DNA of 64,000 bases from Nageia nagi (lineage: Eukaryota > Plantae > Pinophyta). This document shows positions 1 to 28,488 of the stretch, piece after piece. The notes beneath the pieces were generated by a model, which was given only the letters and a program-made list of their open reading frames with translations, ran no database searches and was not told the origin of the DNA. Numbering within the stretch: the stretch's first letter is position 1; every line of letters starts with the position of its first letter. The stretch spans positions 58,962,001-59,026,000 of the forward strand of contig JBITNC010000001.1 of assembly GCA_050084985.1 (NCBI GenBank), read 5' to 3'. The translations under genes were made by a program, and so were the position numbers.

Positions 1-3000
1 TTGTCCTCATCGACCTCCTCCAACACAACCTACCATTAGGTACTAAAAACCTTTGTAACCCCAACATTATCTTTATCAATCGCCTCATTTGTAGTATTGT
101 CCATCTTAGGATTAGGCTTTACATATACTAAAGGCTCAAGACCCTTTACTAGGATAGTGTCCTCTTGCTAATATTTGGTAGGCTCTAGAAGAATATCTTA
201 CATAATCCCAAACTATCATCTGACATGGTCAAACTAAAAGTACTCTTAAAAATCAATCCATTCACCAGTGAGAATCCTTTCCTATTTAATTCCTACTACA
301 TCAATCTCTAGCTTGTCCCATACTAGATACAAATGGTATGGGCAAAACTTGACATGGTTAGGAATGAGGTGACTCAACATGTCATGATAAAACCCAACAT
401 CATGATGAACTCCATCAATGGTATGGATGTAGAAATCCTCCATCCATCATATAATTCCCATGGGATACTTTGCATGAGAGGAAAAACCAAGAATAAAAAG
501 TTCATGAGGGCATGCCATGGAGATATGCTCATACTCCCATGCTTATAGAGTAACAGTAACTATCAATGATGTTCTATTACCCTAAGAGTAAAAGAATAGC
601 TCCTTGTAATATTGTACAAAAAGAATCAGATCCTAAGAAAAGATGGTGCCATATTACATTATGTACACTACCATTGGAAGTAGTTATTAAGGAAAATGGC
701 CACTGCTATTATTAGGTAATGCATAGCACTAGATACATCCTATAAAAAAAGAGAATTGAATGATCCCCTACTGATCATTGTGCTAGTATTGAAGATACCT
801 AATCCCACCTAAGCTAATCTTAGACATGATCATATGAACTTGATCTACCTTGTATAAATAAGAGATGGTAGGTATGATGTTGTCTTGATCGATGACATAT
901 TGGATCCTCTAACCCTAAATGGGTAATTTGTATAGATGGTGGATATCCTCCATAGTAATATTCATCTAACCCTTTAGGATATAGAAAGTCAATTTGTAGA
1001 GTCCCACCCCTCGAGCAAAGTCACCATGAGAGGGTAACAAAGCCTAGGGTTGAAAATAACTCAAACCTAAAATGCAAAATTAACTAAGTCAAAAAAAAAA
1101 TCTACCTCTAAGATCAAACACTGGAAACCCAAAGACTAGGTCACCAATCACTAGAGACCTAATGATTAGGTTGCCTAGTTATAGCATCCACTATTTAAAT
1201 GCTAAAGACTATGAAATAGTTCATCCCTAACTAACAAATGCAACCAAGATGGATGCAAAAGGGTAAAATATGAAAAATGCACTAAAAAAGGAAATCTAAA
1301 CTGTTGAAAGGAGTCTAAATGCTAAAATAACAAAATTAACAAGAAACTAAAATTAGGATTTTAAAACCCTACCTCCTCTTTGATTGGTTGCCTATGGATA
1401 GTTGGTCTCCCCCTCGATGATATACTATCCTATGTAATTGATAAGAAGAGAAATAGGTGGTCCAAGATAGATAGTGTGACAAGTCAACTAGAGCTCTAAA
1501 AAACCACAAAAGATAAATAAAAAAATGATAAGTCACTTTGTCTTTTTATTTTGATCGTGCCTTGGTATATCGATGATTTTATGCTAGACATTAATGATTT
1601 ACATGGTATGTCAATAATCAAAACCAATTGTCATCGACCCATAAATTTATGCACATACTAAAAAGAAAAATAGAGAGAGACAGTATTGGTGAATAAAATA
1701 CTTAATCCCTTTTTTTGGTTCATAAACAAGATGAAAATAATAAAACACATCAAAAAATGAACAAGACCCCTATTTGTTAAAATAGCTTAAGTCATATGTT
1801 TAAAGAATTCAAATCTTGTAAATAGTTCATATTCAAAAAAATCAAACATGATTAACAAACATGATATGACCTTCTACATAAGATCATCATGTACCCTAGC
1901 TAATAGGATAGAAGATAGTAATATCAAACCAATTGTATACTCAAAACTCATACTCTATATCGTAGTAGCTTTGACATATGTGGATGACATAGTGTCCTCA
2001 TGTACATACCACAAATAATAGATAAAGTATTGATATAGATATGAGAATCATTTTGGTGTACATGTATATACAAAACCTGTAATTTATCTCTTACTAGCTT
2101 TGACATACATTAATGACACAATGTCATCACATATCTATCACAAACAACACATAGTATTGGGATAGATACACACATCATTTTGGTTTACACCACAATGGTT
2201 TACAAAATACAATAAAAAATTAAAGTGAATAAAACATGAATTGATCATGATTCGACTAATCAAATTTGACTTATTCATGGAGACTAGGTCAACTTTAAAC
2301 ATCGACTAGGTATCGACATAAGTTAAAGGACTTAAACAAAACCCTTCCCAAAAAAAAAAGAGAATATATATATAAAATCACAAAACAAAAATAATAAAAA
2401 AATTTAAAAATAAAATGTATTAAATTTTAAGCCCTTCCTTCTATTTTATGTTTATCTTAGGTTTATATCACAAAATACAAAAAATATTTAAACCTTTCTT
2501 CTAGCATAGGAATCTAGATGAAAAACATATACCCTAGGTCCCTTAAGAGGTACATCAAGAAAACTATTATTAATTCCTTACACCCCTAAATACCTTGGAA
2601 CCTTTTTGTATATATATATATACAAAAAACCCTAAAAATTAAAAAATATGTCAAAGACAAAATGAAATAAGTCTTTTACTTGTTGATTTGACCAAGGTTA
2701 ATTGATTTGAAAAAAATAAAACTTATGCATAATTCCAAATTTGAGACAATTACCCTTATTTTGACAAATAAATAAAGTATGGGATTGGGTATGACTAAAA
2801 ATATTGTATGAACCTTTGCATAAGATCACCATGTAAGCTAACTACTAGGATAAAAAGCAGAACAATCAAAACATTGTATTTGCAAGGCAACTTATTTATC
2901 ACATTCTAGCTTCGACATAAATAGATGATACATACATTCATAAAGTATCTACCATAAATAGTACATAGTATAGTGATATCGATAAGTTTTTTTTGATAAT

Positions 3001-4162
3001 ACAACCACACTACTTTCAAAATGCTTCAAATAGAAAAGATCAAAAAATGAATTTGATCATAATTCAATCAATCAAACTTGGCTTATTCATTGAGAATAGG
3101 TTAATCCAAAATATTGATTAAAGTAAAAAATATAAGTGAATAAACTTGAATACACCAATCTTTAGAAAAGGTAAGTTTTTGAATTATCCTACACTTAAAA
3201 ACTAGCAAATAATTCAAAAAGGGGCAAAATGTAAACACCCAAAAATGACCCTTCTTTCGAAAGATGAAGGAAGATGAAAAATTAAAGTAAAATTAAAAGA
3301 TTTACTATGTTATACCAATTTCTAGAATCTAACTTCAATTATCGATGACTAAGGCTAGATGTCAACTTTCGATAATTAGACACCAACAACTCTAAAATTG
3401 GTAAAAGTAAAATAAAAATAACAACTCTTGAAGAATCTTAGGAAGAAAGCAAGGGATAATAAATGAATCATTATCCATTCTATGCATCCCAGCTTTGGAT
3501 CACAACCATGAAAAAGCTAGATAGGATTTTCTATGCTGATTTTTTTCCCAAAATAAAAAACTTTATTTGTTTTCAAAATATATAAATAAAACCCTCTACA
3601 GTGATATAGGTGACTTGGTTTGAATGCAAACTTACTCTATCAAAATAGATCTAGGTTTTACTAAGTTAGATGTATTATTGTGTTATGTTTTACATGTTTG
3701 TTTATGTTTAGTTTTATGTTTATTTTATGATATGAATGTGTATGTTTGATATCCTTTTTGTTCGTATGTGTGTAGGATCCACAAGTGAGAAATAACTGAA
3801 CTGATAAGAGAAAGTCAAACAAAATTGGAAAAGAGAGAGATTTAGATTCTTTTACATGTTTCAAAAAATAATTTTTGAAGCTTGCACACATTGAAAATAG
3901 GCCTATAAAGGCCTAAACATTACTTTGTAAAAGCCCTTTTACAAGGAAAAAAATTTAAATAGACTCATCACTGTGTCATTTGAGGTCTACTCAAGAGTAA
4001 TAAAGAAAATGTTGGTCGTAACATGTCTTATCTTATTTGCTAATAAGGTTACTTTTTGAGTACGACATCTATAATTAATGTAATCCATGAGATGGTATCA
4101 ATCTATTATATAAGTTTCCAAACTTAGCATGCATGTCTATTGAATCATTTTTCATAACAACA
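1..4162 (+). mobile_element. 3' part of a Ty3/Gypsy (Tat/Ogre-like) LTR retrotransposon: antisense PMD ORF, repetitive 3' UTR, PPT and 3' LTR
   Basis: Purine tract AAAAAGGGGCAAAA at about 3216-3229 is followed directly by TGTAAACACCCAAAAAT at 3230, a typical Tat/Ogre LTR start. A duplicated block occurs at about 1865-2330 and 2805-3150. The LTR end at about 4162 (..TAACAACA) is a guess. Confidence 0.55.
505..1032 (-). pseudogene. Plant Mobile Domain (aminotransferase-like PMD, PF10536) remnant, antisense accessory ORF of a Gypsy element
   Basis: Manual minus-strand translation with frameshifts and stops gives LMVTLLEGWDSTN..FYILKG*MNITMEDIHHLYKLPI*G, matching PMD LITALVERWxxETxTFHLPxGEMTITLEDVxxLLGLPIxG. 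Further on, VTL*AWEYEHI matches LLQxWxxEH. Confidence 0.7.
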
Positions 4163-5039
4163 TAATAAGGTGTTATATATATATATATACCTATCATAGT
4201 ACCAACATGAGTCACCCCTTAGAGCATGACTCCCTCGATGTACTATGCAACAACCTGCATATAGAGTTTCAAGCATCCTACCCAGGGTAATCCTTATCCA
4301 TCAATTCCATAGTCACACACTACCCAAGATATCACACCTTTGAGGCATATATCGATCTCTAGGAGCACCAAGTTCATTTGGCCACACACCACCATAGTGA
4401 CCTTTTAGTGTAGTTTCAAACTACACTCTTAGGTTATGTTAAGGCATTATGACACCTTATAGAGGGTGGATAATAATTTCCCTAATAGATCAAAAGAGGG
4501 TGACTTATAAGCATTCTAAAAGACCTAAGATGATGGTTTTAAACTATTCTTGAAGGAATAAGTTATGATAACTTTTTTAGATTAGTTAATCACCCCTTTA
4601 TGATGCTAACACTTATAAGGGTAGTTTTAAACCATGATATATATCCTTTGTGATTTAGAATTAGGAATTAGATAATCTAAATATAGAAATAGGGAGGAAG
4701 GTTCATTTTTATTTGATTTAGTCTTTTTTTATGAGATAATTACCTTTTATAAAATCTTATTTATTGAAAATTTCAAATGAGATTATTGAGAGAATTTTTG
4801 AAGTAAAAATTATAGATTATAATAAAAAAACAAAATATTAGAATACTATATTAAGTAGTATTCTAGATAATCAAGATAGAAAAGAATTAGAAGATAAGAT
4901 TTAAAATATGTTCACCAACAACTATAGGAAAAACATGTTTATTTAGGATGTAAATTCCCATATATATATTATACATTATAAACATTATTTTCTTTTGATT
5001 AACCAATAAATTTGGTATTAATAAAAAAATATGGAATTT

Positions 5040-6830
5040 TAAAGGATCTTTATAAATTCAAAGAACATAATCATCTCAAAGCTATATTGAGATATCCCTA
5101 GATGCTACATTCTCCTCTCTCTACCAAGCAAATTTTTGAATTTTAAAATGAACAAGCATAAATACTCTATTTATAGTTTGACCTTCAAACCTTATTAACT
5201 TGGATAAATAGAAAAATGATAAACCTTCAACTTTATCTGCAGATTATTTTTACCATTCTAACTTTATCCATAATTTAAATAATTTCTTCCCTAGTATCAT
5301 GAAATAATTTAAGACAACATTTGATTTGTTTTTTCCTATCAAAATTTGAACATAAAATTTTACTTTGCTACTCATCTTCAAATTTGAATTTTAAAACTTC
5401 ATGTTACATCATCTCTACTCTTCTTACTTTTTCTTGGGGGATCAAGCGTGGGTCATTGTATGTAAATTCCTTTGTCCACCTTCCTGGGTTCAAAACTTGG
5501 TTATGGTCTTTTTCTATACTTTGTTATTCTTATTTTGAATCTTCCACTTTCCCTTCATTAGATAGTGAAGGATACTAGTGTTGTTTATTTTGCTTCTAAT
5601 ATTCCTTATTTTTAGCATTATTTTATTAGGTATTTGGTCGCTCTTCTTTAGGTCCTCTTCTAGAGATCGATAATTGCTAATGATGTCTTGCATTTTCCTT
5701 TTTAGTCTGAGAGGGAATTTGTATATTGATTTCTTTATCAGATTGTTCCATCATCTTGATTTTGTTTGCTTGTAATATCTTTATCCTTACCAATAGATAA
5801 GATATGAGACTTTGCTTTCTCATCATGGTTGTTAAGTGCTACACTTTCTTCCTTTTTGTAATGTGCCTCACTCTTCTCCTTAGTAGTGGAAAACTTGAAA
5901 TGATATAAATAATATAATCTTTTCTTTATTTCCCTTCTTAGATAACACTTTTGAAGATGCCCCTATTGTTAATAATTGTATCATCTTAATGTATAAATTT
6001 CATAATCAATGGTTTGGATCCATATCCTCCAAGGTGAAATTAGTGTGATTTTGCTTAGCCAAGGTGAAGATGTCTTCATCCATACCTTGATTCTTTCCTT
6101 GGTCAAATCCTTCTTCTCTACTACATTCTCTTTTATAGGATTATCTATATCTATATATTGTCCTATAGAGTTTGCTATCTAGGGTATAGATGTTGTACTC
6201 CAAAATTTGGTTGGGAACCTATATAGGTTAACCCAAACTAGGTACCATGGAACCTTTTTAATGAAGGGATTAATATCCCTAGACCACTTTCTAATATAAA
6301 GACCCTTTTATCCATAAAATCAATGAGTATTATGTTTTAATACCCTTTTTATATCATCCATGTTTTCAAAAATATATATGAAAAAGTTACATGGAAGAAG
6401 CACAATTTGAAAGTCATTATCACATTCAAAAGTATTTCCTCCATATTGTATTAAATCTTCTCAACAAGATTGCCTACCTTTCATTTTATAGATGATTGTC
6501 TTGCTTAGTTATTGCATATTCAATTCTATGTCTATTTCCAGTATTATCATTGATATTTGTGGTTCTGATCCTTTACATGTTTCTTCTCTTTGGTTATTTT
6601 CCTTCTTTAAGTCTTGTGCTCCATTTGTTCACTCTTTTTCAGGAATCCTCTTTTTGCTAGAAGCATTTTGTTCTCTCTGGTGAAGAGGACTTATTACCTC
6701 CAACTTCAATCCTAGTGATTGCCTTGATTCATCTTTTTATTGTGCTTTTTATCCCCTTCCTCCATCATCTACTAATGATTGCCTTGATTTATACACTACA
6801 AATGTGGATAACTTCTAAACTAAAACTATA
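5040..6830 (-). mobile_element. Degenerate L1-clade LINE: ORF1 (DUF4283) and probable start of the endonuclease
   Basis: Minus-strand translation at about 6120-6400 gives FFIYIFENMDDIKRVLKH..KGLYIRKWSRDINPFIKKVPWYLVWVNLYRFPTKFWSTTSI..IANSIGQYIDID, a classic plant L1 ORF1. Weak APE motifs occur near 5090-5210. Confidence 0.7.
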
Positions 6831-7015
6831 AGAAATCTATAATTTGAAACAAGTTTTGGAAAATAAAAAGTCTATAAAATGTTAGGATTGTTATATGGTT
6901 AGTATTTTATAAGGTGATTATTACATGGGATAAGCTTAGTATAAAATGATTTTAAGGCCCTAACTAGTATAATAAGTAATCAAGATTAAGAATCAATTTA
7001 ATTAGCTACTTGGAA

Positions 7016-7793
7016 CATGCAAATTGATTTGGAAAATTAATAGTAGTTTATTAAAAACTTTATAACAAATAAGAATATTTTAAAGTTGATAAAATACATT
7101 AAATAAAAATTCACAATTTGTACAATGTATTACCCAATTTAAAATGATAATTATAAATTAAAGTACACTTGAATTATATCAATATATACATTATGACTGA
7201 ATTAAGTATGAAATAATGATAAGTTTTAGTAAGAAGTTGAAAAATACTAATAATATTTTAAATTATAAGTTAAAAGTAAAAATGATTTTTTAAAATTTAA
7301 TCCAAATTTAATAAATTTGTAAAAATTTTTTGCACATCATTCATGGATAATTCTCTTTCTCTCTCAAATCAAGATAATTATCCAAAATACATTTTAATTA
7401 TATCATGCAAGCTGATTTGGAAAATTAATAGTAGTTTATTAGAAACTTTATAACAAATAAGAATATTTTAAAGTTGCTAAAATACATTAAATAATAATTC
7501 ACAATTTGTACAATGTATTGCACAATTTAAAATGATAATTATAAATTAAAGTACACTTGAATTATATCAATCTATACATTATGACTGAATTAAGTATGAA
7601 ATAATGATAATTTTTAGTAAGAAGATGAAAAATACTAATAATCTTTCAAATTATAAGTTAAAAGTAAAAATAATTTTTTAAAATTTAATCCAAATTTAAT
7701 AAATCTTTTAAACTTTTTTGCACATCATTGATGGGTAATTCTCTTTCTCTCTCAAATCAAGATAATTATGCAAAATACATTTAAATTATATCA
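7016..7793. repeat. 388-bp tandem duplication (2 copies), plus degenerate partial copies to about 8060
   Basis: CATGCAA.TGATTTGGAAAATTAATAGTAGTTTATT starts at 7016 and at 7404, and the copies are nearly identical throughout. Confidence 0.9.
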
Positions 7794-8144
7794 ATTATTA
7801 ATTATGATTGAATAGTTATGAAAAAATAAATAATATCATTATAAGTTTTAGTTAAAAGATTAAAAATGCTAATAATCTTTTTAATTTTAATCAAAAGTAA
7901 AAACTTTTCTAAATTTTAATCTAAAATTTAAAAAATCTTTAACTCCCTCTCAAATCAAAATATCTATATAAAGTACATTTAAATCTTATTAACTATAAAG
8001 ATTTACAATGAGAAGATGAAAAGTACTAATAATCTTCTAATTTTAATCAAAAGTAAAAATACAGTTAGCTGTTACTTGTTTAGCAGAAGAATATTAGGGT
8101 TCGTTGCTGATGATCTGAGAGCATCTGCTTCGGAGCCCATGGTA

Positions 8145-8605
8145 TACATTGAGCAGAAAATCATGGAATGGATGTGGGATGAGGTAGAAGACTAGCTGAG
8201 GAGAATGTCATGGACACTATGCACCAGAAAGTGTTCTTTGCTAATGACATTGATCTTTATTGTTTTCAATTTCTTTTGCAGAGATTTGAGTTTTTGATAT
8301 TATTGAATTGACTAGGTTTGACATAGATTACGTTGAGCAGAAAGTTATGGAATGTGATCCGTTATCATCCATTTCAATAACCCCTGGCAGGTAGTCTTCA
8401 ACGTCATCCTACATCCCTTCCATAACTTTCTGCTGAAAGTAATCTATGTAAAAGTAGGAAGCTGTTTCTTTTTGAAACATAGTAAATGCAGTTATATCTC
8501 AAACTTAGATCTGTACAAAAGAAATGAAGGTAAGAGAGATCAAGGTCATCGGATTCGGACGAGACACTTACTGGTGCAGAGGGTCCATGCAAATCTCCTC
8601 CTTTA
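8145..8605 (-). ncRNA. Inverted-duplication hairpin derived from the TPL-like gene; candidate pri-miRNA / hairpin-siRNA precursor
   Basis: 8321-8352 is the reverse complement of 8418-8449 at 30/32 nt. Looser complementarity extends over about 8197-8320 versus about 8475-8603 (exon 1 end plus intron 1). 8145-8198 is a second inverted copy matching 8388-8441 at 45/54 nt. Expression and processing are not demonstrated. Confidence 0.55.
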
Positions 8606-8660
8606 GAAACTTATGAATGGTATATACAAATTCAATGTTCAATACATGAGCCGCATCCAT
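8355..8660 (-). pseudogene. TPL: TOPLESS/TOPLESS-related corepressor 5' fragment (LisH exon, phase-2 intron, start of CTLH exon), truncated
   Basis: ATG at 8660 gives MDAAHVLNIEFVYTIHKFLKEEICMDPLH, then a GTAAGT donor (intron 8479-8571), then FQKETASYFYIDYFQQKVMEGM*DDVEDYLPGVIEMDDNG. This is colinear with TPL MSSLSRELVFLILQFLDEEKFKETVHK|LEQESGFFFNMKYFEDEVHNGNWDEVEKYLSGFTKVDDN, including intron position and phase. The acceptor is mutated (TAT|G) and Trp has become TAG at 8409-8411. Confidence 0.85.
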
Positions 8661-8741
8661 TGCCACATCACTCAAAACTCCAGAGACTGGGGACGCTCAA
8701 ATGTGCTTGGCTTTCCAAATTCCAAACCTTCCTCTTCCCTT

Positions 8742-9361
8742 CTTAAAAAACATAAGCAAAACTGAGATAGACAAATATCCAATATAAGTTAAATTGCTCT
8801 AAATACAGATCTGAAAATTAAGCAAAAACAAACAATTGGAAAATACAGCTAAAACTTTCATCTTTTCCAAACCGCCTCATTTAAAAACAAAAACCATAAG
8901 CAAGGGCGATCCTTAAACTGTTAGCAAACTAAGAAATAGACATATATAACGGATCTAATAGAGGATTTATGGAAGAATTGATCTATTCGTTTCCACAGAT
9001 CATACTAATAGTAGAAAAACTTCTCCGAAAAGACGCCATTCGATAAATCAGACTATCCGGATAACAGCATGATATTGAAACCTACTCACTTTTGCAAATA
9101 TTGAGAATAAGCACTAAGAAATGCACTATTTCTCCATGAATTGGCATATACAATAAAAAATGAAAATTCCCAGAGCTCACAAAGAGGGATCAACAACAAT
9201 ACAAGACGGTCCAGTTAGCGCACATACCCACACATTACTGAGCAATGCTTGGTGGCTTGGATGGCTGGAACCCCTATCTGTATATAAATTCAGCTAACAC
9301 AATGGAAACTCTTGGACGTTCGAACTACCCAAACCTAAGATCTTGATCATCCTATTTATAG
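8742..9361 (-). promoter_or_regulatory. Putative Pol II promoter and 5'-UTR intron of the TPL-derived locus
   Basis: Minus strand shows CTATAAATAGG (9351-9361) and TTTATATA (about 9281-9288), a GG|GTATGT donor at 9227, a U-rich intron and a TTATGTTTTTTAAG| acceptor at 8742, about 80 nt upstream of the ATG. CpGs are retained here, unlike in the flanks. Confidence 0.55.
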
Positions 9362-10499
9362 ATGATCTTATACATGAGTGATTCCTACACCAGCACATTC
9401 CTTTATTTTACATATTAGTGTATATAATGTGATCACACTCTAATAGACCCATGGACTATATTGTGGCCAATATTTTTTTTTGGATATTGTACAAATTCGT
9501 AACTGGTCTCTAACATGTATTCATCACATTCATCTAGATCAAATTTTAGACTTATTTAGTCCATCTTGGAATCTATCACTAACAACGTGTGAAACTTGCA
9601 TAATATGTTAATATATTTGTCATTCTATGTAATAATGGTATGATGGGCTTGTTACATATGGTGAACAATGATTTGTTTTTCTAAATTAGGATGCTTATGA
9701 ACAGAAAACTATGTAAAATTAGTGACACATCTAATTAAATATTATGCATAATAACAAAACTATGTAGAATTATTATTTATAATAAATGCTAGTCAAAAGG
9801 TTTTTTAATTTTATTTATTTTATTGTATCATTGAATATTTTTATTATTATGTATTTTATTTTTTATTAAAATAGAAGAGAGGGTTTTTAAAGGTTTCCTT
9901 CAACATTTACAAAATTTGAACTAAGTTTTCGAGTAAACATTCTTCATATCGTTGTATAAAAAAAATTTAAGCCCTTCTTATGGTAATTGAAAAACTATCC
10001 CAATAATTGAATAAAAATAATAGAAAGAAAATACATAAACATCTACAAACCTAATATACACAATAGTGTCATATAGGTTTCTTTCCCTTTATTGAAACAT
10101 ATCCTAGAGTTCCATCTCTTATGAGTCCCATTCTACACTTGAGCTCCTTTACTTGGAGTTCTACTTTCTTAGAATAAATTACTCCCATGCAGTTAGTATG
10201 AAAAAGAAGAACCAACACCTTCTTCATGTTCTTCATCATATCTTTGGTACCAATTAGGCTTCAAGATAAGGTCATTTGGATGGGATTTCCATAGATTCCC
10301 TTGAAGCTTCCATAAGGTGATCAACAATGAATGATGTAGCCTCGTTGACCAATGCTTTCATAGGACTTAAACATTAATGGAAAGGGAATTTCCCTTTCAA
10401 ATGTATTCTAATTTTGTGATTCCTCCTTTTTTCATAATGTTTACAACCTTAGGAGTTATAACATCCATAGCCTATACCTCTTCCCGTATTTCCTCTTTT

Positions 10500-14540: not shown

Positions 14541-15230
14541 TATTACTCACATAGTGAGACTAAGAAGGGGGTTGAATCATTGTGATAAGTTAAAACTGAA
14601 ATCTTTAACAATGAAAGTGAAAATAATGCAAACATTAAACTAGATAAATTTAAAACACAAAGAGAGACTAACACAACATAAGATATAAAAAGATTCACCA
14701 ATATGGCTACATCTCTAATGAATATTGCTTTGATCATGATAAAAATCTAGTCATTGTAAAGCACCAACTTTTCAAATAGTTTACTAGCATCTGTTGGAAG
14801 GAGAACCAACCCTTTATTTTTGCATAACCCATTGCAAGGAGCACTAACCCATCAATTTCGAGCAACCCCTCATACCCAAATCCAACTTGAAAAAATAATA
14901 GTTTAATAATTTTGATAAAAGATTATTATAGCCATATTAAAGATCCTCAATGCTCTAGCTAATCAACCTCTTCGTTTGTCTATCTCTGGCTAATTCTTCT
15001 AATTACTCCTTGTGACCAATTTATTTCCCTCATTTTCATTTGAAATAATTTAGTACTTACAATCTCTTTTCTATCTTAGTAAAATATTATCAACAATACT
15101 GCTAACAATACTACATATCTTGTTAACTCTATAAATTCATCATTCTCATTTTTTATACACCTCTATCACAATATACCCTTCAACATCCTCTCTATATATA
15201 CATATCTTAGTAGCTTCTATTGGTCAAATT
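14541..15230 (-). mobile_element. Copia-type LTR fragment (U5 end) related to the LTRs at 16325 and 29480, in opposite orientation
   Basis: TATTACTCACATAGTGAGACTAAGAAGGGGGTTGAATCA is the reverse complement of the family LTR terminus (ATTCACCCCCCTCT..GTCA..TGTGA.TAACA). It shares TTCACCAATATGGCTACATC and GCACCAAC motifs. The right boundary is approximate. Confidence 0.6.
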
Positions 15231-15559: not shown

Positions 15560-16324
15560 TTGAAGATAAGGGATATCTGATATGAATAAAGATTTGTAAT
15601 TCTAAGATCATAGTTAGAGAAAAAGAACCAAAGTTATAAAAGTATAATGGAGAAGGTTTACCTATTATTCATTTTCCAAGATTTGAGTACATCATGGAGT
15701 TAAAGTGTGAAGTTAATGATAATCTAAAAGCTAAGTATTTTCCTATGAGTTTCATTGGAGATACTAAAATAAGGTTTTATTCTTTAGATCTAAGTATAAT
15801 TACTTCCTTTTAATAGTTAAATTTTTTTTTTGTTTAAAATTCATTTGAAATTCAACATCAAGAACTCTCTTACTTTGATCGATCTCATGAGTTTCAAGCA
15901 AGTTTCAAATGAAATGATAGAGAAGTATGTTCCTAGATTTTATAAATATCGAGATCATTAGATGAAACTATTTTTGAAAAAATGGTGGCTAAAGTTTTCA
16001 TAGAACATGTTATCACACAGTTGTAATCAATTAGCTATGATGATATTCATATGCCATTTTCAGAGATGACTTATCATTTGATTGAAAAGAAGAAATATAT
16101 GATTAAGGTAGGACAAGTCAAGCATGCAAGTAATAAAAAGCATAACTCTAAGAAGTTATATACTCTGAAGAATGAGAGGCATGTCAATATGGTAATATCT
16201 CAAGTTTCAAAAATGTTAAATAATTATTTAGCAAAAGGATTGACAAGGATAAAGAATAGAAGAGAATATGTTGAATATAAAAATAATCCTTGTAAGTATA
16301 AGTAGACTAATCATTTCTTATATT
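15560..16324 (+). pseudogene. gag: Ty3/Gypsy gag (Retrotrans_gag) remnant, left part; continues at 32456
   Basis: LKCEVNDNLKAKYFPMSFIGDTKIRFYSLDLSIITSF is visible. Removing the 16325-32455 insertion rejoins FLY|HQVKCHSTKGCVEMKKKLHELLE, a CxxHxxxGHxTxxC-type Gypsy knuckle. Confidence 0.65.
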
Positions 16325-18870
16325 TGTTGATCTATGACATTTTCATTATTATAAAATTGATAATAGTGATAAAAGGTACTATTACTATTTACAAAGATAT
16401 ATTTGATCACAATATCAAAGGTGTATATGAACCCATAATATCAATGAATGTAAAGTGAAGTTGAGTGCAATAATGTGGATATGGCTGTGCACATGTTAGT
16501 GGCTATGGTAGTGCATTCATGAAGTACCAATAGTAAATATCCTATTATTCAAGTACAATCAAGCATATGAATGATGTTACCAAGTGTAAAGAACTGGTAG
16601 TGAAGATATGCCCTATTAGGAAAAATTCATATAGTACCAAGTAATGCACTTTTGGTAAGTGTTAAGGTTGGGTGTTAATATTGGTTTTTGATAGGTTGAA
16701 CAAGTGAATACATAGACAAATGCTACAAGAATTGTATTCTCAAATGATGAAATCAATAGAGTTGTGCTTATCCAAAGTACTCTATGGTCACTTGCTTAAA
16801 AGGGATGCTAATATGTTAATCAAGTGAATAGATAAATGAATAAAGGAAATAGACTAATTCTATCATAGGATGTAAACATAGAGATACTCATTCAAAATAT
16901 ACTATGTCTAACACCCTAGTGAGAAAATAAAATAATCCAAGAACTTTATGATCGGTAAGCATCAAAATCATAAAGGTGTCTATTAGATAGCATTTATATT
17001 GTTGATAAAAATATATTAAGTCTGATGGTGCAAATGAAAAAGTGTAAAGGAAAAGAATTTAAGGATTGGTATAGGAAGATAATAGCATAGGCTACCAGTG
17101 GATGATGTAAGAAATGCAAAGATGACTTGAATTATTCTAATTCCAATGGAGTAGATAAAAAGACATAAAGGAGGAAGCGTTGAGGACTAGTAAGATAAAG
17201 GAATAAAAGAAGATACCAATGAATGATATCAACACAACAGAGAAATGTAAAAAGTACTAAGTCTTACAATTAAGAAGAAAAGGCTTATGAGAGACAAAGG
17301 TTGAGTACCATTAAACAAGAAAGAACAAAGATCCTTTGCTTGATGATGTCAATGAATGGATGATATTCAATAATACAAAAGATCTAATACCATAGGAAAG
17401 GAGGGTATAAAATTAATAATTGATAGAGCTTGTAATTAGAATAAGTTCTTATGAGTGATGTCAATAATTTAATGATATGTAAACAAGGCACTAAGTCCAA
17501 TGATTTGCTTGAAAAGGCTTAAAGGTGATCAATTTTAAGTACCAATAAATAATATAAAGTGAAGAATGAAGGTAAGATATTGAAAAGTGATATCAACAAT
17601 GCAAAAATACATTGATTCCAATGATTTAAATAAAAAGGCTTCAACGTAATCAAATTTAAGTATTGATGAAGTGATTTTTATGAAAAATAAGGAAAGGAAT
17701 TTGGTAAGTGATGTAAGCATTCCATGCATTGAGTTATCTATATCAAAATAGTAGTTTAAGAACCAATAAGATGTTTACAAGATCGTATTGAATAGTTACT
17801 GATATATTAGATGCTAAAGTGAATTAGAATCTATCAGATATCACTGTAAGATATCATATGATAAGTTAAACCTCTCTACACTAGCATCATTGTTAGATTG
17901 AATATGTAGGTCATCGAATAAGAAAGAGTTTCAATGGGTAAGATGAAAATGCATTGAAAATAGATGAAGACATATATGATGGACCACTCTAGTACTGACA
18001 ATCAAGTATAGGGCCTAAAAAAAAAAAAATATGACAAGAGACATCTACTGTGTACAAGTTATCATAGAGTATGTAGCACAACCATATAGTAAATAATAAT
18101 ACCATTGAATAGGCATGAAAGAGGATAATATATAGAAGTAATGAGAGTAGAGATATTAAGAAGCATAAAGATCAACTCCTATTGTAATTTGTGTCAATTT
18201 GTTAATGTTGTATGTCATGTAGTAAGTAATGTAGGCATTAAACAAGATAAAAATGGGTAAATCAAAGTGGAATATTCATTGTTAGAGCATGAAGATGAGT
18301 GATATCTAGGTACATATCATCATGAAACTTAAAATATATACTACTAGAAGTAGTTACAACAACAATCATAATTGAAATGGATAGTGCGAGTGATAATGCA
18401 CATTTTGAATAACTTAATTGTGAAGATGCTAGAAGTAGAGAGTAAGAGCATACAAGATGTTGGAGACTATAAATAAGATTTGAGCTACAATGAATATTCT
18501 TGAATGAAAAATATAAATGGGAGGCTATCATTTTTATGAGGTGTTAAAGTGTATGAGTTGCAATCAATATGTTTGGATGAAAAACTTGAATACATTATAT
18601 TTTTAGAAGTATAAATAATGAGGAGGTGAAGCATAATAGAGAGAGTGTTCTTTGAATAAGTGAGTGAGATTTTGATTAATACATGTAGATACATATTATC
18701 AAATATTATAGTGTATTATCTATGAATACTAATTGAAAGTTTTAGATAGAGGTAGTCAGAGGTGAAGTTTGATGAGCTATAGACTAGGAAGGGATCTAGG
18801 AACAACAAGGGCATCTTTAAATGTCAAATTGATTATTAAGATTTGAAATCCAAATTGGTGTTTGACATAG

Positions 18871-19050
18871 GGGTTGGTGCTCCTTCTAATTGGTGTTAGA
18901 AAAGTAGGGGTTGGTTCTCCTTCTGACTGGTATTGGTAAAGAAAGGGTTGGTTCTCCTTTTGGTTGATGTCAGTAAAGTAGGGGTTGGTACTCCTTTTGA
19001 TTGGTGTTAGTAAAGAAGGGGTTAGTGTTCCTTATGGTTTGTACTAATAA
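18871..19050 (+). repeat. 37-bp tandem repeat (about 5 copies) inside the LTR
   Basis: GGGTTGGT(G/T)CTCCTT.T..TTGGTGTTAG.AAAG.AG units start at about 18871, 18908, 18945, 18982 and 19018. The partner LTR has fewer, partly deleted copies (32060-32190). Confidence 0.8.
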
Positions 19051-19859
19051 ATGATTATAAATTTGGTACTTTACATGGGATGAATTTGCACCATGATATA
19101 AGAAATCTTATCAAGATATGTAGCCATATTTGTGAAATTGGTTATATCTAGTGTTGTGTGATGCTCTCTTGATGTGATTTCCTTGCTTTAATCTATTTTA
19201 GTTTTTATCTTATAGGGCATTAGTTTTATAAGTTCATAATTTGAGGTTTAAAAATATAATACAGTAATTCACCAACCTCTTAATGTCATTATGTGACTAA
19301 AAATTGGTATCATCTTGGGAAGATCTTGTACCAATACATAATGAGAAAAAGGAATGTATAAAAAAATCATGTTAGTTAAATAAGTTATATCTTGAAGAGT
19401 GTATATAAGAATTGTTAGAAATGACTCTATAGGCAAAAAAAGATGCATAAATTGGTGCAGATTCATTACAAGAGACCAATAATGGACTTAAGGGGGTAAT
19501 TTTAGTTTGTGAATTCAATAGACAAAAATGACCAAGAATAAAGAATTTTACCAAAAAATGCAATATTCAATTATTCTGAATCTACACTACCTCTTCCAAG
19601 AGGATTACAACACCTTTATACCCAAATTCCACCTCCAATTTTACCTAATGAAACTTACTAAAAATAGTAATTTTATCACACATAGAAAAATATGCTTACT
19701 ATTTTTAGAAAGGATACAAATTTAAAAGGATAAGAATACTGAAGAATAATAGAGAGATAACAATGTTATAGCATGTACCATACTAGATAAAGAACCTAAA
19801 TGAATGCAAATTTAGGATTTTCATAAAATTGTTAAGGATATAGGTCTACAACTTGAAAA

Positions 19860-20676: not shown

Positions 20677-21472
20677 AAAGATAACAAATTCCATCAGTCA
20701 TAAAGAATGTAACATAGATAAGGTAGAAACTATCAGGTGCATAAAAGAATGAGGAATAACCTTCCATCAAGAATGAACAAGAGATAATCACCAATGATAA
20801 ATTCTTGGAATATTGAAGAAGATAAGACTAATGATATATCTAAATCCAAGAACAAGAAGATTTGGAGAAATAAAATAATAAAGGAGAATTGTCTCATTAG
20901 CAAATTGAGTAAATCTAGACAATGCCAACAAAATTTGGGATTGGTTATACTTCCACACCATTGAAATTCTTACAACCATGTATGATGCAGTTGTTTGATG
21001 CTAGATGAAAATAAGTTGATTTTTATTGGTAAGATTATGCTAAGTTATTTAATGCCATGTTATATACCAAAGATATCATATTGTTATTGAATTAATAGAT
21101 AAGAATGTGCTAGTGTTATTGGGTAATGATACTACTGGTAATCCATTCATACTTGTACTACCTAGGTCCATATCAATACTATTCAATTGTATGTATATCA
21201 ATGATGTCAAGTTGTATTTTATTAAGTTGTATTTATGTATGTGCATATACTAGATAAAGTATGATGTGTAAAGTAGATACAATTAATGTAGTTGCAATTA
21301 TTATTATTATAATATTAATGTCATATATTTTGTGTTATTTATTTGAAAAGAGAAGGATGGTGTATATTTAGTCATGAAGAATAGGTTATTGATGAGTGAT
21401 AATGAAGGGAAGATGTTATTCTTATATGCCATTACATGTTGGATATCTTGCATTTGTATCTGAAGAAAAAAA

Positions 21473-23191
21473 TGTTGGACTTCGAGTGACACTGAGAGGG
21501 GGGGGGTGAATCAGTGTATATAAAAATAATCAATTTAACCTTCTTAAATAAAGATAGATTAAAAGCCAAAGAAAATTGAGCAAGCACACTAGTACATCAC
21601 ACAACACCAGATGTAACGAGGTTCACCAGATTGGCTACATCCCCGAAAATGATTGCTTGGACACCAATCCAAATCCAGCCATTAAAGAAAGCTTACAGAT
21701 TCATAGCACCAACTGTGAAGGGTAGCACCAACTACCACTTTGCAAATAGCAGCACCTACTGCTTGGAGCACCAACTCCAGCTCTCAAGCACCCACTTGAG
21801 ACAACATTCAAAAAGGAGGAAAGAATATAGTTCTAGAAGACCCTCAATGGTCTAGCTCTAATGTTCACTATTTTATCTCTGCACACAGCTCCAAAGTAAC
21901 ACACTTAAATAATCACACTCCTATCTGCATATTCGTTTTCTCACTTCACGTTCTCTTGATACTCCCCTCTTTCACCCTATTACCTCCATGACCACTCTTC
22001 TCTCCACTCTCCTCTCCTCTTTCACACTCTTACCACCTCAATCACACTTCTCTACTCGGCCATTTTTACTTCATCTATAATCCACACTTCACGTACTTTC
22101 CTGCAACCATTACACATCAAGAAAGCCCCTCATAAAACTATTCCTGTCATGACACATTACCAAAAACAAACTTAAAAGGAATCTTTATTTGTAACTGCTC
22201 CTGCACTAAGAGAGTTCACTATCTGAGACTGTAACTGCTGTAACTAATGAATGCTCCTCTTGCTCAAATAGAGTTGTTTAGACACGTATACCTTTTTCTC
22301 CACTGATTTTGGAGATTTGATAGTATCTGATTATTTTTGATAATTCTGAACTCTTTTCTTCTTCATAATGGTATTTTTGATAATCTCAGACTCTTTGTCT
22401 CGCTTACCAGATGTTTATTGTATACATCGTGATGTCATCATCTCCAGACTCTAGAAGTAGAGTAAAATGCTTCCTGCATGATGTCATCATCTTCGAACTC
22501 CAGAAGAGAGTTCCAATGTATCTACGTGGCTTTTTAGACTTTTCAACACCTACATCGTGATGTCATCATCTCTGGACTTCAGTCCTTACCAAAATGTGAC
22601 TATCTTATCCTTTGTGACATCATCCTTTTGATCCGGAACATTTTACTTCTAGAACATTTACTTTATGGACTCCAGATTTTCAATCTCTCTTTGTTGATCT
22701 CATCTCTGCATTTCAGAATGCTTTACTCACTGGCTATTTGATCACTCTTTGCTGACCTCATCATCTCCAAAACTTAATTCTATTAAAGAATGTGAACATT
22801 GTTCTCCCTGTGACGTCATCTCTTACTTCTAGAATGTTTTACTCGCTGGCTCTGACTCTTTTAGTTGCCCCTTGCTGACCTCATCGCTTCCAGGATCTGG
22901 TTTTAGGTTAAGACCCGAAATCATTGATGTCATCTTCATATTTCCGGAATGCTCTACTTTCGAAATACTTAATTAACTGGTTCTAGCTCCTCAATTTCTC
23001 TTTGCTGACCTCACCTTCTTCGGAACCCAGATTTTTCACAACTGAGCTTTATCATTTCATTTCGGAACGTCATCCTGGGGATCTTAAAATGAACTTATAC
23101 TACTACGCAAAGATATAGCCAAAACCAAATGGACGTGAAGACACAGCCAAAACCACGTGTTGACAACAATGACAATCACCCATGCTCAACA
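21473..23191 (-). repeat. 3' LTR (1719 bp)
   Basis: Both ends match the 28553-28718 LTR. It is followed by the PPT (plus strand ATCTCCCTCTTTGG). Confidence 0.95.
22425..23075 (-). promoter_or_regulatory. U3 array of repeated TGA(C/T)(G/C)TCATC and TTCnnGAA motifs
   Basis: About 9-10 TGATGTCATC/TGACCTCATC/TGACGTCATC units at roughly 50-80 bp spacing, several followed by TTCTAGAA, TTCCGGAA or TCCGGAA. Confidence 0.5.
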
Positions 23192-23392
23192 ATCTCCCTC
23201 TTTGGAATTGTTGGCAACACCACTTGATTAGACACCAACATCGGGACTTTTCTCTCCCCCTTTGTCAACAATAACAAAGGGCATTTACAGACTCCCCCTG
23301 AGTCCATACATGACATTCTCAGGAAATCAATAGTATGCACATAAAAACAAGATACACAGAAGCAATATAGGAAAAATAAACACTCCCCCTGA
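23192..23392 (-). promoter_or_regulatory. Multiple polypurine tracts upstream of the 3' LTR
   Basis: AGGGGGAG/AGAGGGAG tracts at about 23193, 23251, 23292 and 23383. The related element has the same arrangement at 45290-45560. Confidence 0.75.
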
Positions 23393-23413
23393 GAATGTGA
23401 CATCCAGAACTAG

Positions 23414-26400
23414 CTAATGCTTGGGAAGGACAACAACTCCTAGCTTGTTTCGAAGATTTTCGAAGATGTCTTTGGGCAAAGGCTTTGTAAAGATGTCTGC
23501 TACTTGCTCTGTGGTTGGAACAAAATCCAACTGTACTTCTCCTTGCACCACTCTTTCTTTTAGAAAGTGATATCTGATTGCTATATGCTTTGTTCATGAG
23601 TGCATAACAGGATTTTTTGAGATATTGATTGCACTTGTGTTATCACACAGAACTGATATGGGCTCGTTAATCTGTATACCAAAATCTTTTAGCATCTACT
23701 TCATCCATAGAATCTATGTGTAGCAAGAAGTTGCTGCTATATACTCTACTTCTGCTGTAGATAGGGATACTGAGTCTTGTTTTTTACTGTGCCATCCAAC
23801 AAGATTATTACCCAAATAAAATGCTCTTCCACTAGTGCTCTTCCTATCATCCACGCATCCTGCCCAGTCTGCATCTGAAAAGGTAGTAAGTGTAAATTCC
23901 TTTCCTCTAGGATACCATAAACCATATTCTACTGTACCTTTGAGATATCTAAATATTCTCTTTACTACAGTAACATGTGTTTCTTTGGGATTTGCTTGAA
24001 ATTGAGCAACCATACATACTGCTTGAAGAATATCTAATCTAGTAGTTGTCAAATATAATAAACTTCTAATCATTGACCTGTATTGTGTTTGATCTACTAT
24101 TGGTGCTTTATCATCCTTGCTTAATTTGCAGCCTGTCATCATAGGGGTGCTCACAGGTTTACAGTATTCCATGGTAAACTTCTTCAGCATCTCCTTAACA
24201 TACTTGGTTTGAGAAATGAACATGCCATTCTTCAACTGATTGATTTGTAGGCCGAGAAAGAATGCAAGCTCACCTATCATATACATCTCGAATTCTATTT
24301 GCATGTTGTCAGCAAGATTTTTACATAGTTCATTCTTGCTTCCTCCAAAGATTATATCATCTACATAGATAACAACAATTAGCTGATTTCCCTTTTCTGA
24401 TTTAATGTATAAATTGCTATTCACCATTCCTTTTCTAAAGCCTTGCTATTGAAGATATGTATCAAGTCTGGAGTATCATGCTTGAGGTGCCTATTTTAAA
24501 CCATACAGAGCCTTCTTTAGTTTGCATACCAGATTAGGATTCTCTCCCAATTGGAAACCATCTGGCTGTTCAATATAGACTTCTTCCTCAATTTTGCCAT
24601 TTAGAAAGGCTGATTTTACATCCATTTGATAAACTTTAAAGTTTTTATACACTGCAAAAGCTAAAAACATGCGAATAGCTTCTAATCTGGCCACAGGTGC
24701 AAAAGTTTCTTCAAAATCAATTCCTTCAACTTGAGCATATCCCTTGCAAACAAGTCTAGCTTTATTTTGAACCACTATCCCATCTTCATTCAACTTATTG
24801 CAAAAAATCCACTTTGTGCCAATCACATTTTTGTTGGCTGGTCTAGGAACGAGTTCCCATGTTTCATTCTTTTCAATTTGAGTGAGTTTTTCCTCCATTG
24901 CTTTCATCCAGTTTTCATCTTGGCTAGCTTCTGAGACATTTTTAGGCTCTATACTGGATAGGAGAGAATAGGTGCTTGAAACCCCTCTACGAGTTTGGAT
25001 GCCTATATGAAACTCACCGATGATTTGCTCTTGTGGATGATCCTTGTGCCATCTATTTGGTGGAGTTTTTGAATTTTCATCTTCTTCTGACTCATTTTCT
25101 GAAACACCATTTGAGTTACTTGGTGAATTTGAATCTTTTGGTTTCTTTACTTGTGATTGCTGTACAGGAGGCTTAGATTTGTTTTTATTCTTTTTGTCTT
25201 CTTCAATTGAATCTTGATAGGTAGGAAGATCATCATCATCATTTCTCTCGGGAAGATCTCTTTGCTCATCAACACGAACATCAACACTATCAATGATTGT
25301 TTTTGTCCTTTTATTGTAACACCTGTATGCTTTGCTCTTCGAAGAGTAACCAAGAAAGATACCTTCATCAGATCTATCCTCAAACTTTCCTAAATTTTCT
25401 TCTATTCTCTTGATATAGCATTTGCTACCAAAGATCCTGAAGTGCCTCACTGTAGCTCTTCTTCCAAACCATAATTCATATGGTGTTCTATCCTCATGTG
25501 GTCGCATCATACATCTATTTTGAATATACACTGCAGTATGCACTACTTCTTTCTAGAACCTATCAGCAACCTTGCTTTCTATCAGCATGGTTTGAGCCAT
25601 TTCTTGTACTACTCTATTTTTTCTTTCAACTACTCCATTTTGTTGTGGAGTTCTAGCTACAGAGAATTGTGTTTTAATTTTGTGTTGTATGTAAAACTCA
25701 GTAAACTCATCAGAAGTGAACCCACCTCCTCTGTATGAGCGAAGACATTTAATTCTCCTCTCTATCTGATTTTGTACTTGATTTTTAAATGCTTTGAACA
25801 TTTCAAAAGCTTTAGATTTATGTTTTAAGAATTGCACCCAAGTCATTCTTGAATAATCATCTATGAACAGAATAAAATACTTATCTCCATTGAAGCTTTG
25901 TGTTCTCATTGGTCCGCATAGGTCGGTGTGTACGATTTCCAATGATTTACTTGTGTGATATTCTTTCACTTTGAACTTTGCCCGAGTTTGCTTTCCCTTT
26001 TGGCATGAATCACAAATATCATTTGCTGGTGTGCTGATACTGGGCATATCTCTTACTGCTCTTTTTGAGCAAATGTTCATCAAGTTTTTAAAATAGATGT
26101 GTCCCAATCTCTTATGCCATAGCCAATCATCACTCTCCTTGCCTAGAAGACATGATCCCTCTGAAATATCTGATAAGGTGTATAAATTGCCACAGGTTCT
26201 TGTACCAACTGCTACAAGTCTACCACTATTTGCCCTTCGGATCTCACAGCCATGCTTTTTGAAAATTACATCATGTCCTTTGTCACATATTTGACTAACG
26301 CTCAACAAATTATGCTTCAATCCCACAACAAATAATACCTCTTCGGATCTGATGTTTCCATCATTTATTTTGACTGTCCCTTTGCTGATAATCTGTGCAC

Positions 26401-28488
26401 CATCATTGTTTCCAAATCTTACTGACCCACCTTCATATTCCTGTAGTTTTTGAAATTTCTTCTTGTCACCTGTCATGTGACTTGAGCATCCGCTGTTTAA
26501 TATCCATGGTGATGGTTTGTCTTGAGCTTTTAATGCTGTTTGAACGATTAAGGACTCTTTATCCTCTCTAAGTTTCTCCTTTTCTTTCCAGACTTGTTTT
26601 ACTTTTATTTTAGCTTCTTATTTTTTATTATTCTTTTCTACTTCCTGTGGATGACTGCTCTAAAACTGTTTATTCTGTCTTATGGAAGGAAATTGTCTCG
26701 GTGGAAAGAACCTCATGCCATGATTATTTCTGTAGAATCGGGCAATGTGTCCATATTCATGACAGTTGTAACACTCAACAGGATACTCCATTAGTGGGCC
26801 GAATGCATTCCTAGTAACAAAGGTTCTTGGAGTGATATTATACTTACATTCAGAAATTTTGTGTCCATATGCATTGCATTTGAAATAGTATCCATTGAAG
26901 GGATGGATGTATCTATTATATTGCTGAGTACTTCTTGGTCCTGCATAGGGTCTTCTTCTGGAATGCACTTGAGTGAAGCCATCATCCTCTAGTCCTGAGC
27001 TATCTTCCTTCTTCTTGGTTTCTTTTATGTTTTCCCTTTTATGTCATTGGAAGATTGTCCTTGTTCATATCCTAGACCAGATTTATCAGAAAACATTCTT
27101 TGACTGTTAATGATTTCACTGAGTTTAGTCGACCTTCCTTCTAGATATTCAAAAGAGCTGATTCTCTTGGTGACTTCCTCTAGTTGCATACGTAGCCCAG
27201 TTATTTCTTCTTCAAGCTTACTGCAATTTTTAACTTTCATAAGAAGTTGTTCCTCCAAACTCTCATTTATCCTCTTAGATTCTTCCACTTCTATTTTTAA
27301 GGTTTCTATAATATTACTTGCATCATCAAACCTTTTTGAGAGTTTCTTATTTTTCTTTACTTCTTTATTCAGTTCATTCAATGCTATTATTAGTTCTTCT
27401 TCAAGATCAATCTCAATCTCAAAGCCATTTTCTTCATCTGTCTCTTCCTTTTTATGTTCTTGGGCATTTTGATTATCTTCATTCAGTTTCTCTTCAAATG
27501 CCATAAACAATGCTCCATTGTATTCTTTTTCTGATTCATTATTGGAATCATCATCAGTGGAGCCTTTATTTCTAGATATGAAGCTCTGTCTATTTGACCT
27601 TCTATTTCGAACATGAGATTTCATTTTGTGGTTTTTCTCAAAATATGATTCTTGATCATCTTTATCAGTTTTTCTATATGGACATTTTGAAATGAAATGA
27701 CCAATACCACCATAGTTAAAATATTTAAACGGTAGCTTGCCTTCATATTTACCTTTTCCCCTTTTTAGCTTTCTAACAAAATTTGCTTCTGCTCCATCAG
27801 ATTATTCTTCATCATCAGAATCTATTTTGGCTTTGGTACTATTGTTGGCTTTAAACGCTGCTTCCTTTTCTAAATGCTTTGCTTTTCCGATCCTCATTTC
27901 ATAAGCAGTCAGCGATCCATGCATTTCATCCAAGCTGAAAGTTTTCAAATTTTTTGCTTCTTCAATAGCAGACACCTTTGAATCAAAGTGAGATGTGAGA
28001 GATCGCAGTACCTTTTTCACAATGACATGATCTTCAATTTCTTCCCCAAGACCTCTGATTGCATTAGTAATTTCATTTACTCTCAACATGTATGCTTCGA
28101 TGGTTTCATCTTCATTCATCTTTAGAACTTTGAATTGAGCTCTATAAGTTTGGAGTTTTGCTTCCTTGACTTTATCATCTCCTTCGTGAATGCTCTTCAA
28201 CTTATTCCATATTTCTTTTGCAGATTTGCATGCCATAACTTTCACCAGTTCGCTATCCACTAAACCACACATTAGAGCATTTCTTGATTTTGCATCACAT
28301 TCAAATGCCTTTCTTTCTGCTTCATCTAATGGACCTGTAGGGGGAGGAGTGTATCCCCTTTTAACAACATCCCAAGTACCAAAACCCAATGCATTGAGAT
28401 AAGTCTTCATTCGAATTTTCTAGAAAGCATAATTATTTCCATCAAAGAGAGGTGCTTTGTTAGATGAGAAACCTTCTCCGCTTGCCAT
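23414..28488 (-). pseudogene. gag-pol: Copia Gag-Pol polyprotein (UBN2 gag, CCHC knuckles, coiled coil, protease, GAG-pre-integrase, rve integrase, RVT_2 RT, RNase H), with about 10 stops and one frameshift near 27020
   Basis: ORF-track pieces 27802-28410 (gag), 27025-27624, 26660-26968, 25553-26476 (WHKRLGH, HTDLCGP, IDDYSR, TPQQNGVVERKNR), 24491-25543 ([28 protein letters not shown]) and 23714-24427 (YVDDIIF, SDADWAG). ATG at 28488, stop at 23414. Confidence 0.95.

Follow-up and report, generated by a model that had tools for sequence, protein, structure and literature searches.

Organization of the locus

We analysed a stretch of 64,000 nucleotides from the genome of the conifer Nageia nagi (GenBank assembly GCA_050084985.1, contig JBITNC010000001.1, positions 58,962,001 to 59,026,000 of the forward strand). 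This whole stretch is called the window, and all coordinates given here are positions within it. On its minus strand, at 8357-9360, the window carries the front end of a gene of the TOPLESS (TPL) family of corepressors, and this gene start runs directly into reversed copies of its own sequence. An initial annotation had described the locus as a candidate young microRNA (miRNA) or hairpin small interfering RNA (siRNA) gene, driven by the promoter of the old gene and directed against the TPL/TPR corepressors. The parts of the gene start are listed below; the copy linked to the promoter is called copy C, and the reversed copies that follow it are called B and A.

9353..9360, minus strand: TATA box TATAAATA, a direct sequence reading with a presumed function, about 30 nt upstream of the presumed transcription start
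9228..9325, minus strand: putative non-coding first exon of the 5' untranslated region (5'UTR); its 3' end is the donor TGG/GTATGT and its 5' end is a guess
8742..9227, minus strand: putative 5'UTR intron of 486 nt, running from GT to a polypyrimidine-AG end, which lies 81 nt before the ATG
8572..8741, minus strand: exon with 81 nt of 5'UTR and the LisH coding part, from translation
8479..8571, minus strand: intron 1 of copy C, 93 nt, from alignment to copy B and to the canonical TPL acceptor
8357..8478, minus strand: truncated CTLH exon (exon 2) of copy C, from tblastn of TPL proteins and alignment
8353..8417, minus strand: distal part of exon 2 that was not duplicated, forming the 65-nt loop of an inner hairpin, from the repeat finder and the fold

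In the minus-strand direction, the promoter is followed by the UTR exon, the UTR intron, the LisH exon, intron 1 and then exon 2 as far as about 8357; after these come the antisense copies: B with the exon-2 start, intron 1 and the exon-1 end, and A with the exon-2 start once again. The LisH exon opens with an ATG at 8658-8660, contains 29 codons plus 2 nt, and ends in phase 2 at a donor GT (8570-8571). In exon 2 of copy C the homology to TPL ends at about residue 66-67, some 20 codons short of the canonical exon end; because canonical TPL exon 2 extends to residue 87, the break falls within exon 2. The TATA box, 5'UTR intron, LisH exon and phase-2 intron, which the initial annotation had claimed to be retained, do appear to be in place, and their arrangement matches the canonical TPL layout.

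Evidence for a TOPLESS-family origin

Reference sequences were obtained by back-translating the canonical motif K-Y-F-E...W-D-E-V-E and scanning it against metagenome contigs. This gave 58 TPL/TPR loci from other plants, including both cDNA-like contigs, with open reading frames (ORFs) of 1119-1131 aa, and genomic contigs. Comparison of five full TPL/TPR proteins with the 64-kb window by tblastn produced one clear match, at 8474-8361 on the minus strand to TPL residues 29-66 (38 residues aligned without gaps, 47% identical, E = 1.5e-5), and a weak match of copy A to TPL residues 38-54. Other parts of TPL were absent from the window in this search, the remaining matches being at chance level with E of at least 0.7, and the 48 minus-strand ORFs in the 8 kb downstream contained no TPL or WD40 domain according to Pfam. 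A piece at 8349-8408 was identical to TPL exon 2 at 9/16 positions (E = 7e-6).

The LisH exon was matched to TPL exon 1 over 24 aa without gaps, and the BLOSUM62 score of 39 (shuffle P = 2e-4) was attained by only one of the 1196 stop-free stretches of the window, the LisH exon itself. This match reaches the exon end in both sequences. The exon ends CAC CA/gtaagt here and CAT AA/gtaag in the canonical locus L001, at an equal codon position and in phase 2, and the canonical exon 2 of L001 begins tag/G CTT GAG CAG GAA. From two comparisons of cDNA-like and genomic contigs (L006 versus L009 and L022 versus L030), the canonical 5'UTR intron is 390-404 nt long and ends 63-73 nt before the ATG. We also searched a 25-column profile of the three exon-2-start copies against the PDB; the exon-2 piece after the stop codon, which MAFFT misplaced, was omitted from this profile. 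The top match was rice TPR1/ASPR2 (residues 35-54, E = 0.023), followed by Arabidopsis TOPLESS.

Several other searches were negative. Single exon pieces, which at 20-31 aa are too short, gave no match in Pfam, the PDB sequences or the ESM Atlas, and phmmer with the 30-aa LisH exon against 1.84 billion representatives returned two spurious repetitive proteins only. Exon 1 and the first exon-2 piece also had no BLASTP match among the TPL exons; for exon 1 the scored shuffle alignment was used. Of five local ORFs looked up by exact sequence, none (0/5) was present in the protein collection.

Canonical TPL/TPR genes share with this locus a 5'UTR intron that stops 60-80 nt short of the ATG, a LisH exon that ends in phase 2 directly after a His codon, an intron of about 100 nt followed by the CTLH exon, and the motif Y-F-E..V..G.W-D.V-E.Y-L.G....D-D-N. 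LisH is thus followed by CTLH in the family order, with the family's intron position and phase, although the sequence is divergent: residues 29-66, which are near-invariant in canonical TPLs, are only about 47% identical here. In further contrast to the canonical genes, the locus has three extra N-terminal residues, ends at about residue 66, lacks CRA and WD40, and contains stop and splice defects. An ORF with the CRA region and two WD40 propellers of TOPLESS was found neither in the window nor among the 48 downstream ORFs. A TPL-derived locus with LisH and CTLH, as first annotated, is well supported by the tblastn and shuffle results and by the equal intron position and phase; given the missing CRA and WD40 parts, the stop codon and the dead acceptor, it is a fragment of a TPL-family gene and not a gene.

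All three copies carry Q-K-[V/I]-M-E where canonical TPLs carry [E/D]-[K/E]-V-H-[A/N]. Because these non-canonical residues are common to copies A, B and C, the divergence is older than the duplication, which indicates that the parent was already a divergent member of the TPL family before the duplication took place.

Inverted copies and loss of coding capacity

The reversed copies downstream of the break, both on the plus strand, have the following extents.

8198..8356, plus strand: copy B, an inverted partial copy, from the arm alignment, as are the three parts below
8198-8226, plus strand: last 29 nt of the LisH exon in copy B
8227-8315, plus strand: intron of copy B, with the donor GT changed to GA and the acceptor AG kept
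8316-~8356, plus strand: exon 2 start of copy B, with a 24-nt deletion
~8127..8197, plus strand: copy A, which repeats the first ~20 exon-2 codons in inverted form once more, from alignment and translation

An inverted duplication of the exon 1-intron 1-exon 2 segment had been part of the initial annotation, and on this the repeat finder, self-BLAST and the arm alignment agree. The repeat finder identified inverted arms at 8317-8352 and 8418-8453 (36 nt, 92% complementary or 33/36, 65 nt apart) and intron-derived arms at 8269-8327 and 8467-8525 (59 nt, 76% complementary). The earlier count of 30/32 complementary positions between 8321-8352 and 8418-8449, around a loop of about 65 nt, was reproduced and lies inside the 36-nt arms. 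Sensitive self-BLAST of 8001-9500 against the whole window gave a self-complementary span at 8198-8600 (E = 4e-36) and a second register at 8138-8448, with no further match to this region elsewhere in the 64 kb. In a global alignment of 8198-8352 (plus strand) with 8600-8418 (minus strand), 122/154 positions were identical (79%), and there were three indels of 5, 1 and 24 nt. Arms this diverged do not belong to a young locus, and that part of the initial description has to be given up.

Copy A is identical to copy C at 49/61 positions and to copy B at 27/33, and the three copies are roughly equidistant from each other (80%, 79% and 82%). This is consistent with one compound fold-back event that included a second template jump. 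At the two junctions (~8353-8358 and ~8195-8201) at most 2-4 bases each are shared, as judged by eye.

The coding capacity had been reported as dead through a mutated acceptor and a change from Trp to TAG, and both defects were found in copy C. Its acceptor dinucleotide (8479-8480) reads AT, whereas AG stands both in copy B (8314-8315) and in TPL, and an in-frame TAG (8409-8411) stands where copy A has TGG and TPL has Trp. Copy A, with the Trp codon intact, has a private TAG of its own at 8193-8195, where copy C has TAC. Since every stop or splice defect is private to one copy, the ancestor was open at the time of duplication. The differences between the copies comprise 19 in amino-acid-changing codons and 1 that is silent, and it follows that the three copies have been free of coding constraint ever since they were duplicated and have drifted neutrally. 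Transitions are unusually scarce among the substitutions between the arms: their ratio to transversions is 11:21, and none of the exon-derived differences (0/8) is a transition. Two other origins were considered and ruled out: arms derived from two once-functional paralogues, given that nearly all differences are amino-acid-changing, and a retrocopy, given that introns are present.

Hairpin potential and possible targets

The minus-strand RNA of 8190-8610 was calculated to fold with -142.1 kcal/mol, compared to -87.0 ± 5.4 for its shuffles (z = -10.2). Only one part of this foldback is miRNA-like.

8317..8453, minus strand: inner hairpin with a 36-bp stem (3 mismatches) and a 65-nt loop

When folded as 8300-8470 of the minus strand, this inner hairpin reached -50.2 kcal/mol (z = -4.5). 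The initial annotation had predicted a fold-back RNA driven by the native promoter, and in a 642-nt unspliced model (the reverse complement of 8100-8741) the foldback between copies B and C was indeed kept in both the minimum free energy and the centroid structures, without being displaced by copy A. A transcript from the old promoter would therefore be expected, on these folds, to fold back over about 400 nt into an imperfect hairpin that contains one near-perfect stem of 36 bp.

The 2018 criteria of Axtell and Meyers reportedly limit a miRNA hairpin to at most 300 nt and its duplex to at most five mismatches, at most three of them in asymmetric bulges. With 137 nt, 3 one-by-one mismatches and no bulge the inner hairpin lies within these limits, whereas the full foldback of about 400 nt is above the 300-nt limit. 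A scan of 7800-9700 with Rfam 15 found no miRNA family, the best score being 20.9 bits versus a gathering score of 76. In the literature searched, nothing relevant was found on hairpins derived from TPL or on miRNAs directed at it.

The core stem had been set apart from a much more diverged intron-derived stem, and this contrast is real. However, a special preservation of the core was not supported, as a window of 33/36 was equalled or beaten in 39% of match/mismatch column shuffles (P = 0.39). The three core mismatches are all transversions, and none of them is G:U-tolerated.

We then compared the core with the homologous site in the 58 canonical TPL/TPR loci. This site differs from copy B at 11-14 of 27 nt, and the best homologous 21-nt window has 6-9 mismatches to the core, which exceeds plant miRNA targeting. 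Amino-acid differences alone force most of these mismatches. With at least 6 mismatches in 21 nt to every canonical gene, possible targets are limited to close paralogues of the divergent parent. The proposal that the locus acts against the TPL/TPR corepressors was therefore not upheld, all 58 canonical loci being at least 11/27 nt off. That the locus yields any small RNAs at all is conceivable, but we consider it rather doubtful.

A CG- and CHG-retaining island

The gene-start remnant and its copies lie within a block of distinct composition.

8060..9600, no strand: island keeping CG and CWG (CHG) sites, from observed/expected ratios and counts per 200 nt

The initial annotation had noted a CpG-keeping island in CpG-depleted surroundings, and the counts bear this out. 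The observed/expected ratio (o/e) of CG in the block 8100-9361 is 0.51 versus 0.10 in the flanks, and that of CWG is 1.21 versus 0.22-0.33. CG and CWG sites together number 5-11 per 200 nt across 8001-9400, 3 in 9401-9600 and 0-2 outside. The CG count of the island is significant (Poisson P = 5e-6), and its edges at about 8060 and 9600 are sharp. An AT-rich tandem repeat (7007-8060, about 17% GC) with a 388-bp unit, consisting of two full copies that are 94-95% identical and then of decayed partial units, stops exactly where the island begins, at its left edge. An inverted repeat pair shaped like a miniature inverted-repeat transposable element (26 nt, 81% complementary, 100 nt apart) lies at 9597-9748, immediately upstream of the promoter region.

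As a yardstick for decay we used the direct repeats at 16324-19304 and 29479-32457, which are about 3 kb long, 71-77% identical and have a CG o/e of about 0.05. Compared to these, the block carries a methylation-free mutational footprint: the retained CG and CHG sites and the lack of a transition excess show an escape from methylation decay throughout the divergence of the copies. This argues against a heterochromatic 24-nt hairpin-siRNA locus. Loci of that kind attract RNA-directed DNA methylation, whereas the block here keeps its CG and CHG sites.

The island is not the only one in the window. CG and CHG sites are also kept in a copia element (21.5-28.65 kb), at 39-41 kb, where the third island (39000-41000) has a CG o/e of 0.42-0.52, and around a glyoxalase-like ORF (58.7-59.0 kb). 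Since other gene-derived pieces (39-41 kb and 58.5-60 kb) keep CG and CHG as well, the island is not specific to function, and gene-derived DNA seems, from these examples, generally to keep such a footprint here.

The copia element (21470-28650, minus strand) is of the Ty1/copia type, and its gag, pre-integrase/integrase and RVT_2 domains are divided among at least five ORFs. The 101-nt matches at its termini show 98% identity, its CHG o/e is 0.9-1.5 and its CG is partly kept; the retention of CHG and of part of CG makes it young relative to its surroundings. The direct repeats used as a yardstick flank this element and are probably the long terminal repeats of an older element into which it was inserted. 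The glyoxalase-like ORF (58704-59003, plus strand) encodes 100 aa with an N-terminal domain similar to glyoxalase At5g48480 (E = 9e-8), lies inside the GC-richer island at 58.5-60 kb, and may be a gene or a gene fragment. Elsewhere in the window, a tandem array with a period of 37 nt (18871-19055; overlapping 74-nt copies offset by 37 nt) has units starting with GGGTTGG, and inverted matches to it are found at 14655-14820. On the minus strand of 1-8140, 1/48 stop-free stretches matches DUF4283 (E = 5e-4), a domain common in plant retroelement-related proteins.

Interpretation of the locus

Following these analyses, we think that the locus is probably a rearranged relic of the 5' end of a divergent TOPLESS-family gene, and that the hairpin is a by-product and not a selected small-RNA gene. 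The starting point may have been either the original locus or a partial copy made at the DNA level with its introns kept. A fold-back rearrangement would have cut the gene inside the second coding exon, and synthesis or repair would have changed direction 65 nt behind the break, producing the reverse copy of the exon 2 start, intron 1 and the exon 1 end that is now copy B. A second jump could then have added the other reversed exon-2 piece, copy A. The three copies have meanwhile drifted neutrally to about 80% identity, and in the promoter-linked copy the splice acceptor is gone and a stop codon has arisen. The 65-nt spacer, the further jump and the 2-4 shared junction bases are all features of template-switching or microhomology fold-back rearrangements, although here the mechanism is deduced from the layout, and at about 20% divergence the old junctions are no longer sharp.

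Inverted duplication is also a known route to new small-RNA genes. Young Arabidopsis MIRNA genes, among them MIR161 and MIR163, were born by inverted duplication of their targets (Allen et al. 2004, as cited in PMC1790633). As in the MIR161 and MIR163 loci, both arms of the present locus resemble a protein-coding gene well beyond a 21-nt site; as in MIR163, the promoter of the gene of origin appears to adjoin the foldback; and as in young MIRNA loci, erosion has left one well-paired segment. Unlike young MIRNA loci, the arms here are far more diverged (79%) and include an intron, another inverted piece follows them, the gene of origin belongs to the TPL family, and the locus is known from sequence alone. 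Fahlgren et al. 2007 (PMC1790633) describe drift and death as what probably happens most often to inverted-duplication loci, and most likely it is in this stage of the route to MIRNA genes that the locus stands. The reference list of PMC1790633 also includes Mu killer, a natural inverted duplication that silences MuDR. The locus resembles hairpin-siRNA loci, which are diced by several Dicer-like enzymes, in being an imperfect foldback of about 400 nt from a local inverted duplication, with an adjacent promoter that could read it.

A number of observations weigh against an unselected relic. The TATA box and the splice sites of the UTR intron appear intact on sequence. CG (0.51) and CHG (1.21) were retained, compared to a CG o/e of about 0.05 in a similarly diverged repeat pair, and the ratio of transitions to transversions in that pair (313:235) differs from that of the hairpin arms (11:21; Fisher P = 0.016). 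So long an escape from methylation decay is the footprint that an active Pol II promoter would leave, and it would be in keeping with a promoter that remained in use. Exon-derived parts of the stem are better kept than intron-derived parts (58/66 versus 59/82, Fisher P = 0.025); this is not attributable to coding constraint, and the AT-rich intron may mutate more or align worse. Finally, the absence of selection is deduced from weak statistics on about 150 aligned positions.

Most of these observations would also fit a selected small-RNA gene, MIRNA-like or of the hairpin-siRNA kind, in which the retained TPL-type promoter drives the foldback, a Dicer-like enzyme cuts the 36-bp stem, and close paralogues of the parent are silenced. 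The strong foldback (z = -10.2, and -4.5 for the inner hairpin) and an inner hairpin within the structural miRNA rules would suit such a gene, as would a promoter and UTR structure that look intact, a footprint long free of methylation decay, and the somewhat better preservation of the exon-derived stems. Precedents exist in MIR161, MIR163 and 16 Arabidopsis loci, and in the co-duplication of the MIR163 promoter (PMC1790633). However, the preservation of the core stem is within chance, all three of its mismatches are transversions, and canonical TPL/TPR genes are excluded as targets. In addition, the natural acceptor is dead, a cryptic acceptor could excise part of the 5' arm, and CG/CHG islands occur at 39-41 kb and 58.5-60 kb too. 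We therefore regard selection for a small RNA at this locus as unlikely. Quite unlikely, too, is its more specific form, a long-lived, methylation-free hairpin gene with its own promoter, whose 21-22 nt RNAs would restrain a lineage-specific TPL-like subfamily in a gymnosperm.

The scrambled pieces in both orientations and the short junction overlaps could also point to a patchwork of gene pieces, assembled by a transposon (Pack-MULE, Helitron or CACTA) or as filler DNA at a repaired break, with an intact parent elsewhere. The sharp compositional edges at about 8060 and 9600 and the further gene-fragment islands in the window would agree with this. Around the block, however, there are no terminal inverted repeats and no target-site duplication, but only weak AT-rich low-complexity similarity, and the 1.0 kb from the promoter to the CTLH exon are in their native order and spacing, more than captured fragments usually keep; such a patchwork seems improbable to us. 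It is very improbable that the gene is still alive, its LisH exon being joined by splicing to TPL exons outside the window, over the dead exon 2 and the copies, so that the hairpin would be mere intron content. Introns of great length occur in gymnosperms, so exons further downstream might be located there, and a live promoter would agree with the island and the intact start structure. However, skipping exon 2 would remove the start of the CTLH domain, the break is inside exon 2 and not in an intron, and neither a TPL nor a WD40 signal was found in the 8 kb downstream, nor any further TPL signal in the window. Fold-back chimeras are a known artefact of long-read libraries, and an inversion created by assembly or by such a read would give near-identical arms. 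The arms here differ at 32/154 positions and by three indels, and a third copy has another extent, which disfavours an artefact to the point that we give it hardly any weight.

The significance of the locus as a relic of a TOPLESS-family gene would depend on whether it is expressed. If it is expressed and diced, it would be a case of a corepressor family giving rise to its own small-RNA regulator, and a rare gymnosperm intermediate on the inverted-duplication route that still has the promoter and UTR intron of its parent. If the gymnosperm hairpin gene described above were real, it would be the first small-RNA regulator that is both derived from and aimed at the TPL corepressor family. If the locus is inert, which is likelier, it would be a cleanly resolved case of a fold-back rearrangement that killed a gene and left a hairpin-forming relic. 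Caution is then needed when CpG islands are used to argue for function in this genome. An inert locus would also mean that, in a genome heavily depleted of CG and CHG, gene-derived DNA can keep an unmethylated-type footprint long after its coding has ended.

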